DNA of 64,000 nucleotides from Pavona decussata (taxonomy: Eukaryota), in contig CDRNST010000318.1 of assembly GCA_977016875.1 (NCBI GenBank), positions 248,001-312,000 of the forward strand. The letters run 5' to 3'. Each line of letters starts with the position of its first letter. Position 1 is the stretch's first letter. Both the position numbers and the translations under genes were made by a program. A model generated the notes under the pieces. The model had not been told where the DNA came from. It searched no databases and was given only the letters and a program-made list of their open reading frames with translations. Shown here piece by piece: positions 25,812 to 37,017 of this stretch.

Positions 25812-28800
25812 TCAAGAATAGAAGAGTTTAGAGAACAGGTTATCATGAATGCCTTGGAGGAAGTCTGCCATTGGAGCCGTAGTTGTCGCTTCCTCGACGG
25901 CGCAGTTTTCAAACCTAGAAATATATTTACACTTAGTTTAAAACCGTATTCAAGACTACAAGATATGTTTCTCTTCTTAAGTCTGAAAGTGACCCGGATA
26001 TCATCAGCAAATTAACCAATCATAATATAACAAGTGCGGTAGTTAAAAATCCATACTATAGTCAGAAGGCGTTTAATAAGGCGACGGTTTCGCTTTTGAT
26101 TCTCACAGTTTAGATGTGAAAGCCAACAGCGACAAAGGCCTTGCTCAGCTTTCATCAGTTTCAATCTGTTTTGATAGAAAATACACTCTTCTTATAAGAT
26201 CGTTGCAGCCTTGTGTTCCACCGGGGAGGGAGATGATTAAGCAAGGGGGTGTCTTCATGCACCGGTAAGGCTTTCAAACCCGAGGGGTAAGAGTCCATTC
26301 CGGTTCTTTCTTGGTCCTCCTTATTCGGTTACATGATACCGGGCTAAACTCTCGGTACCAGTCCAGTGCCGGTGCTAGTTCCTTCGCCCCCCACTCCCCC
26401 TTCCCGGTAACTGCACTGAATGGGGAATCTCGTACCGGCCGTGCACAGGCTTTAAAGACGCCTTATCCGCCGACGTGTTACTGTACGTAACCGCGATAAC
26501 TTACTGTTTTCTTATTTCCTCGGCTTTCCTCTGCATTTTAAACTGGATGGACTGTGCCTAAAATTGCGAAAAAAAAGATGATGTTAGTTAGCGTGAATTA
26601 TACTTCTAGGTTGAAACAATAATGGGATGAGATGCTAGCCCATGACAGGTCAGTTCTATAGAGAAAGACACAATCAGATAACTTCAAAACAGTCTTTGGT
26701 CAAGATCAGCTGGAATGCGATCTTGAAAAAGAAGCGGACAGTATACGCGCAGATTTGTTGAAACTCCTCCAACTTCGCTAAAAAGGGCCGGCATTTTGTT
26801 TTATTATAACGAATTGATTACCTCATGTGGCAATTAATAACAATGAGTATTGTGGACAGCCAATCAGACCGCGGTCCTGGAAACCTGAATAAGGCTGAAA
26901 CTACAGACGTCTGTTGTCCGACGCTCAGGCCTGTCTGATGCTCAACTGAATTAGCCAACTGCATCAAAAGGTACATAGGTGTTGGAGTATTTATTCGCCT
27001 GAATAATTTGCTGCTTGTTAAACAGGTATTAAGAAAGCTGGTCGGTCTGTTTTCAGCTGTGTAAATTGTCGCCTCCGACGTTAAACACCGTACAACCTCG
27101 TTCTCAGGGTCCTCTCTCTACCTCCCTCGAGAAAGGAAGGGAGGGGACCCTAGGGAACGTATTGTCCAGCGACTTTCGCTTCGTCTGTCACTTCCGCCTT
27201 CAGTGCCACAAGCTTATGAAGGTAAGTCTGCAGTCGTTTATTGCTCCTTGTATGTAACTTCAAAGACCCTTTTCTCATTTCCTCCGACTGTTTCGCAAAA
27301 AACCGTTAACCTTAATTTACAATTAGTCAACAAGCTTTCGCATTTAGACTCACATCGGTGCCGTACGCCTCACAAATACAATTCTTCGACTGCGTTTGTG
27401 TTTCCCTTTGAAAATGATTGTGATTGTGATAGAAATCCTTGCGAGAGTCTTGGTAACGCTTCATTTTTTTTTTCGCCAGACATTCAATTCTTCGTTAAGT
27501 TACGGTATTTTATTGCCGTCAAATCAAACACTCGTATTGTCCGGCAACTTCGGAATTCGATGATCACTATCGAGCGAACTGCAGTGATGTTAGTAATTTC
27601 AGCAGTTACAAATGAAGGCTTGAACGGGATTTAATCCATGACCTCTGCGATAACGGCGATGTGTCCTACCAACTGAGCTATCAAGCCAACTGGGAGCTGG
27701 TTCATTTTTGAGTTCGTACCATTATACCCGTGGCCGTGGATCAGTGGTGAATACCGATTGATTTTTTTCCGACCTCCGGGAGGGGGTGGCATATAAAAAT
27801 GACGGGGGAGGGGGGCATTGTGGATTGGTACTCCTTAGGGTGCTAAAATCTAAAATGGCCATATACAGAGTAAAGAAATCAGTTTCGAAAGAAACTGCGG
27901 TGCTGCGTCGGTGGGAAGTGGAAAGGAATGTTTGGTTTATCAACAGAGTTTCTAAGGTAATTTGGCCGCCGTAAAGAGATTCGAGTGCTGACGTTTTGAG
28001 CGTCACGAGTCCTTCGCCAGAGCGAATCGTGCAGTAGTCATTTTGGTGCCTCTTAGGGTATGAGCAGAAATATTTGACACGAAAATGTATGTTAGTCAAC
28101 TGATTTGGTACAGTACCGTGCAAATGTAAGTTGACAGTCTCCACTCGAAACTCGATCCTCGATCCTCGAAGCTATCGAGACTATTCGAGGCTCGAGTTTC
28201 GAGTATCGAGTATCGAGACGCTCGAAGAATTTTTCGAGGATCTCGATGGCAGCTTTCGAGGAAACGATTAATTTCTCGAACCTCAAACAATAAGAGAGAA
28301 CAAAAGCGATTTTCCCATGGCTCTTGCATTTGGTCTTTTTTTTAGTTTGGTCGAAAGTTGAAGTAATTCAAATCAGCGGCAGTGAGTGTTCGATAAATCT
28401 GTTTCGGCGCGTTTCTTCCTTCCGCGTATTATTTAAAACACATCCGTTCGTAGTTGTTGTAAAATTAAAACATGCTTAAATTTTTTCATATGCTACACCA
28501 ATTCTTTTTAATCAAACTTCAAACTCGACGAAGCGAGCTTAAAACTGCAAGATTGCGGCTTTTTCGCGGAATGTAACACGATCGCTTCTGAAATATCTTC
28601 GCTGCGCAAGGATTATAGTTGATTGTATTTGAATACTTCGAATGAAAACTTCGAAAAAAGCATTTCCTTAAGTGAAAACGCACAACATTTACGGTAGATT
28701 CGGCAAGGAACCGGGGAAACTTCAACGTGGCCGTTCGCTTGCCTTTGAGCAGACTTCGAATGTTTACATTTGCGGCGTAGCGTTACAAATTATCATCCCA

Positions 28801-37017: not shown

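Follow-up and report, generated by a model that had tools for sequence, protein, structure and literature searches.

Eukaryotes load nickel into apo-urease by means of the accessory proteins UreD, UreF and UreG. In plants and fungi (Arabidopsis, soybean, rice and fission yeast) the urease is a single gamma-beta-alpha chain and UreG has a histidine-rich N-terminus; to our knowledge, urease maturation in these organisms involves no UreE. Fission yeast uses the NiCoT transporter Nic1. In the complexes of Helicobacter pylori, UreF forms a dimer that binds UreD (UreH) and recruits UreG, and the same role is presumed here for the UreF of corals. The gene described below is the UreF of the coral Pavona decussata, which was found in a window of 64,000 nucleotides (nt) of contig CDRNST010000318.1 (C318:248001-312000; assembly of 602 Mb in 1180 contigs). 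It is very probably the host's own single-copy gene, serving the nickel loading of apo-urease together with UreD and UreG.

The coral system resembles those of plants and fungi as they are generally known in having a fused urease, a His-rich UreG and no UreE that could be found; this is a likeness of organization. It differs from fission yeast in that no counterpart of the NiCoT Nic1 was found in the P. decussata genome. The UreF of H. pylori (PDB 2WGL; 3SF5, UreF-UreH; 4HI0, UreG-UreF-UreH; 8HC1) belongs to the same family as coral UreF. Its gene, however, is intronless and lies in the ure operon with UreE, whereas the coral system is divided among intron-rich genes, with no detectable UreE and a His-rich UreG.

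The closest described proteins are those of other corals and an anemone: Montipora foliosa (P0034), Acropora muricata (P0037), Acropora digitifera (P0123), Oculina patagonica (P0049), Desmophyllum pertusum (P0071) and Nematostella vectensis (P0084). They are 217-246 amino acids (aa) long and share exon structure and motifs with P. decussata UreF, Nematostella having six of the seven introns. P. decussata differs from them in a non-conserved N-terminal extension of 10 codons, if the first ATG is used. In P. decussata and one close relative, moreover, intron 6 has grown to 6 kb by an antisense Mab-21 gene, which is not found in Desmophyllum or Nematostella. Bilaterian UreFs (Branchiostoma floridae P0056, Lingula anatina P0039, and those of bivalves, gastropods, spiders, Ptychodera and Amphiura) are 40-49% identical to the coral protein and share with it the C-terminal FSKLFYS; introns are shared by amphioxus (seven) and Lingula (six). 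In amphioxus UreF adjoins UreD, whereas in P. decussata it lies on a contig apart from urease, UreG and UreD.

UreF is already annotated in Acropora digitifera (as ‘urease accessory protein F-like’), A. muricata, Montipora foliosa, Oculina, Desmophyllum and Nematostella, and also in amphioxus, Ptychodera, Amphiura, Lingula, many molluscs and spiders. Because the same gene is annotated in other corals and in many invertebrates, P. decussata UreF is simply one more orthologue of a known gene, and there is nothing novel in its presence. The patchy occurrence of urease in metazoans was noted in 2011 (PMC3073912), and a KEGG annotation of Acropora digitifera listed urease and an accessory protein in 2013, with a discussion of host urea use (PMC3750612). 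Host URE1 protein has been detected and measured in Montipora capitata (bioRxiv 10.1101/2024.04.02.587798); a host-origin urease in corals is already published and is not a new point here. The idea that connects nickel, urease and calcification is credited to Biscere 2018 (through citations in PMC6235957 and PMC9357087) and also to Crossland and Barnes 1974. In the open literature that was searched, no paper on the intron structure of animal UreF or on the clustering of urease genes in animals was found. The additions made here are modest: an exact UreF gene model with a corrected start codon, the conservation of UreF introns between cnidarians and bilaterians, and the clustering of urease, UreG and UreD.

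Structure of the UreF gene

The gene model was rebuilt independently from open frames and boundary sequence. UreF occupies positions 25812-37017 on the minus strand and consists of eight exons and seven GT-AG introns, with phases of 1, 1, 1, 0, 0, 0 and 2 in order. A pyrimidine-rich tract precedes each of the seven acceptors. When the exons were concatenated and checked for length, frame and stops, they gave an uninterrupted frame of 741 nt, made up of 246 codons and the stop. The composition of the window is eukaryotic (G+C 32-50%, no N). The parts of the gene are as follows.

36912-37017, minus strand: exon 1, codons 1-36, donor in phase 1; residues 2-26 of the Montipora and Acropora UreFs align here
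35702-35776, minus strand: exon 2, with the FPTGGFSHSxGxE motif; 83% identity to Montipora foliosa P0034 over residues 26-54
34412-34453, minus strand: exon 3, 42 nt; intron position common to amphioxus and Lingula
33579-33709, minus strand: exon 4, with the SNHVAxRASxRQ motif; 77% identity to Montipora foliosa P0034 over residues 65-112
32933-32995, minus strand: exon 5, 63 nt; 83% identity to Montipora foliosa P0034 over residues 107-130
32610-32777, minus strand: exon 6, 56 aa; core of the Pfam UreF domain
26558-32609, minus strand: intron 6, 6052 nt, the largest intron; houses the antisense Mab-21 open reading frame
26505-26557, minus strand: exon 7, 53 nt; junctions as in the spliced metatranscriptome protein P0003
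25812-25914, minus strand: exon 8, with the stop codon at 25812-25814 and the C-terminus ...HDNLFSKLFYS; 88% identity to Montipora foliosa P0034 over residues 204-237

The rebuilt model agrees with a preliminary description of this DNA, in which a 246-aa UreF had been assembled from short exons, down to the end positions 25812 and 37017. That description had also stated that only two exons were visible as fragments among the open reading frames (ORFs), and the default list of ORFs of 60 aa or more does contain only exon 4 (ORF 33534-33746) and exon 6 (ORF 32439-32783). The gene had further been called hidden, which is apt for a prokaryote-style ORF list and inapt otherwise, since orthologues are annotated in other corals.

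Other placements were tried for two of the exons. A ‘GNILCFLK...’ frame at about 33253-33312 was dropped as exon 5; the Ridgeia and coral UreFs align to 32933-32995, where the acceptor is far better. For exon 7, candidates at about 26150-26260 and at 26100-26190 were dropped, as neither had consistent splice phases, and P0003 gave 26505-26557.

Two in-frame ATG codons are candidates for the start of translation.

37015-37017, minus strand: first ATG, giving 246 aa
36985-36987, minus strand: Met11, probable start, giving 236 aa

The two were compared with other corals, among them L015, a contig from another coral assembly (ENA ERZ26692694) that is colinear with positions 22000-40580 of the window. 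In L015, where exon 1 is found at 4844-4949, codon 7 is TAG; in the window it is AAG. The UreFs of Montipora and Acropora begin near window residue 8, and Met11 is conserved. Because of the TAG in L015 and the position at which the Montipora and Acropora proteins begin, the real start is probably Met11, and the predicted protein would have 236 rather than 246 aa.

Family membership and conservation

The family scan was run exon by exon, with exons 3 and 7 falling below its 20-residue minimum. Exon 6 alone matched the Pfam family PF01730 with 46.3 bits (cut-off 23.3, E=7e-12), over profile positions 89-142 of 151; the hidden Markov model check proposed in the preliminary description thus gave a match above the curated cut-off. 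When all six frames of the genome were searched with Pfam UreF, a single match exceeded the cut-off; it was at 32607-32801 of the window (minus strand, 46.6 bits). A second copy was considered at C126:2870340-2870570, where the score was 21 bits, below the cut-off; this was rejected as a chance match, as tblastn with coral and Nematostella UreF was not significant there.

A word search with the frame of exon 6 returned 24 UreF fragments with identities of up to 98%; one of these, P0003, joins exons 6, 7 and 8 at exactly the modelled junctions. Full-length UreFs were gathered by searching first with a Ridgeia UreF fragment and next with 17 aligned animal UreFs. When full-length UreFs were compared with the window by tblastn, all eight exons were matched in order and with no gaps between exons. 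The residues of Montipora foliosa P0034 that correspond to exons 1-8 are 2-26, 28-51, 54-65, 67-109, 110-130, 131-186, 187-203 and 205-237, with identities of 63-88% per exon and about 80% overall. The P. decussata protein keeps all 31 of the 31 columns that are invariant among the 17 animal UreFs, including F, P, G, G, F, H, S, G and E in exon 2. It also keeps the family motifs FPxGGFxHSxGxE, NHxxxRAS..QG, H..xxxG, RxxxxxxxRL..xG...AQ and the C-terminal P..D..Q..D...LF.S. In an indirect comparison, a profile built from the orthologues, and not from the window's own model, matched the H. pylori UreF structures 2WGL, 3SF5 and 4HI0 along their full length (E=3e-20, positions 6-225). Judged by its sequence, P. 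decussata UreF is an intact member of the UreF family.

In L015 each of the eight exons is present at the same length as in the window and is flanked by the same splice dinucleotides. Nucleotide identity between the two loci is 89-99% in the exons (99% in exon 2) and roughly 70-83% in the alignable introns. Exon-by-exon counts, summed from Met11 on, gave 0.20 synonymous substitutions per synonymous site (dS) and 0.04 nonsynonymous substitutions per nonsynonymous site (dN). The resulting dN/dS of 0.20 against L015 indicates that the predicted gene evolves under purifying selection.

Animal origin of the gene

To map the introns of Nematostella (L016), Branchiostoma (L017) and Lingula (L018), each protein was aligned, with exact splicing, to the locus that encodes it, and the intron positions were placed on a common alignment. 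The introns of the window gene fall at columns 36 (phase 1), 63 (1), 77 (1), 120 (0), 141 (0), 198 (0) and 216 (2). Amphioxus UreF has all seven by position and phase, together with one extra (seven of its eight introns). Six of the seven are present in Lingula and six in Nematostella, neither gene having any besides (6/6 in each). A quick maximum-likelihood tree was made of 65 UreFs, a set that held no named dinoflagellate, plant or fungal UreFs. The named animals, with unnamed transcripts nested among them, were split from the named bacteria and metagenome sequences by a branch with 100% support in the Shimodaira-Hasegawa-like approximate likelihood-ratio test (SH-aLRT), and within the animals a cnidarian group (support 92) and a bilaterian group (support 96) were recovered. 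The coral UreFs therefore group with those of other animals and share their intron positions with amphioxus, Lingula and Nematostella, in answer to the two comparisons, of phylogeny and of intron positions, that the preliminary description had proposed.

Intron 1 contains a dispersed repeat.

35972-36285: dispersed repeat of about 310 bp in intron 1, with at least 2988 first-look candidate copies genome-wide

Forty scored copies of this repeat are 92-94% identical and lie on many contigs, and the repeat in part matches its own reverse complement. Because the gene holds an intronic repeat with copies across the genome and is syntenic with a second coral, its host origin is well backed. The earlier claim that the gene is chromosomal and not bacterial contamination is borne out by its seven introns, by this repeat and by the synteny with L015. 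The sequence evidence points to an old animal gene of the coral host, and contamination, a symbiont origin and recent transfer are effectively excluded.

Intron 3 also carries a dispersed repeat of very high copy number, at 33970-34283. Thousands of coral metatranscriptome contigs cover the repeats of introns 1 and 3.

Partner genes in the P. decussata genome

Profile searches matched the urease gamma, beta and alpha domains to colinear exons at C7:2522053-2536419 (plus strand), the sole such locus in the genome. Because the three domains are colinear at one locus only, the urease is predicted to be encoded by one fused gamma-beta-alpha gene, as in plants and fungi. UreG exons were matched at C7:2546731-2548599 (plus strand) and UreD exons at C7:2552294-2553957 (minus strand). 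Upstream of the UreG exon that bears the P-loop, an open frame at C7:2546198-2546443 (plus strand) encodes HHHGGHEHSHGANEHGHTHE. This frame is the predicted His-rich N-terminus of UreG; plant and fungal UreGs have a similar one, and its presence accords with the lack of UreE. The partner search suggested in the preliminary description has in this way found urease, UreD and UreG in the same genome, and no NiCoT nickel transporter.

Urease, UreG and UreD lie within about 35 kb of C7, with UreF on another contig. In amphioxus (Branchiostoma floridae CM022899.1), UreD (L017 1-1076, minus strand) adjoins UreF (L017 1501-5396, plus strand) at about 400 bp from the start of UreF. It is possible, though rather doubtful, that the urease cluster is a remnant of an ancestral metazoan arrangement that is co-regulated and has been lost or kept as a unit, and that the Mab-21 gene nested in UreF might couple its expression with that of UreF. 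If this were true, loss or retention of the cluster as a unit would account for the uneven occurrence of urease among animals.

A second, weaker pair of UreD-like exons was seen about 9 kb upstream of urease, at C7:2513340-2513667 (minus strand; profile positions 43-114, E 0.003-0.17). This pair may represent either a paralogue or a fragment of a pseudogene. The cluster spans about 40 kb (2513340-2553957) when this fragment is included.

Proposed function and alternative explanations

The mechanism considered here is carried over by analogy from established work on urease maturation in H. pylori, Klebsiella and plants. A UreF dimer would bind UreD, and the UreD-UreF scaffold would dock on apo-urease and recruit the GTPase UreG. 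Hydrolysis of GTP by UreG would drive nickel into the carbamylated active site of urease, with the His-rich tail of UreG probably replacing the missing UreE, and the mature host urease would then hydrolyse urea in host tissue, yielding ammonia and CO2. We infer that UreF is expressed in P. decussata, that it makes these protein contacts and that it may have a role in nitrogen recycling or calcification, a role that others have already put forward in print.

Several results weigh against this assignment. Exons 1, 2, 4, 5 and 8 individually had no Pfam match, being too short to score alone, and exon 6 alone, compared with the PDB, had no match at E<=1. The genome search with the UreE_C profile gave no match, and the six-frame genome search for a nickel transporter (NicO/NiCoT, PF03824) gave none at E<=0.1, although a gene split among exons could escape such a search, which did not extend to other metal carriers. 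The first ATG of UreF is not conserved in L015. Finally, four coral metatranscriptomes (8% of the sampled words), mapped on positions 32400-37100 (4701 letters), covered the intronic repeats only, at 90-95% identity, and contained no splice joints of UreF exons; the sole piece over the exons was unspliced and 92 nt long, at exon 3. These four runs are evidently from other corals, and the missing exon coverage is uninformative rather than negative. Relatives do have spliced UreF transcripts (P0003, P0040, P0053 and others, on contigs of 1-2 kb).

The lack of exon coverage in these RNA data, and the stop that follows the first ATG in L015, are both consistent with UreF being a relic, silent or in decay: a pseudogene of recent inactivation, still intact in appearance, that the coral no longer uses. 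However, no stop codon interrupts the frame, the 14 dinucleotides at the splice sites are all canonical and unchanged in the second species, dN/dS is 0.20 at a dS of 0.20, and every one of the 31 invariant residues is kept. Little can be read from the missing coverage, since the RNA runs come from corals that reach only 90-95% identity even in the repeats, and Met11 provides a conserved start. A relic is therefore considered improbable. We also see very little chance that this UreF homologue has taken on another function in place of urease maturation. Such a change has no direct support, the location of UreF on a contig different from that of the urease-UreG-UreD cluster being the only point in its favour, whereas UreF co-occurs with a complete set of urease, UreD and UreG. 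It has also kept every residue that is invariant in animal UreFs, as well as the C-terminal motif of bacterial UreF.

An origin outside the animals, whether by contamination from a bacterium or dinoflagellate or by recent horizontal transfer into the coral, would find some support in the best bacterial UreFs, which are 38-42% similar to coral UreF and so about equal to those of other animal phyla, and in the make-up of the tree, from which named dinoflagellate, plant and fungal UreFs were absent. Against this, the seven introns match amphioxus in position and phase, and six match Lingula and Nematostella each; the synteny with the second coral assembly includes the nested metazoan Mab-21; the intron-1 repeat has thousands of candidate copies across the genome; and both the G+C (34-45%) and the full SH-aLRT support of the animal clade fit a host gene. 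The probability of a non-animal origin is accordingly regarded as negligible.

With UreF read as the coral's own gene for urease maturation, the P. decussata genome is predicted to carry all the known needs of an active nickel urease: the fused enzyme itself, UreD and UreF, and the His-rich UreG. Symbionts or bacteria need therefore not be the source of urease activity in coral tissue.

The gene nested in intron 6

Intron 6 of UreF houses a separate gene, which is antisense to UreF and not part of it.

29614-31527, plus strand: Mab-21/cGAS-like ORF, 637 aa, single exon (PF03281, 40 bits; PF20266, 55 bits)

The ORF has 91% aa identity to its counterpart in L015, and no nested Mab-21 was present at the UreF loci of Desmophyllum, Nematostella, amphioxus and Lingula. 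Because it is present in L015 and absent from these four other loci, the predicted gene is a lineage-restricted insertion into the UreF intron.

An ungapped search of intron 6 found no repeats of 60 nt or more. By blastn, two pairs of weak repeats (77-80% identity) were seen just upstream of the Mab-21 ORF, 28107-28217 with 29300-29425 and 28612-28720 with 29015-29124, one of them inverted and one direct. Their translations share ‘SILE..FEDRGSS..STYICTVLY’.

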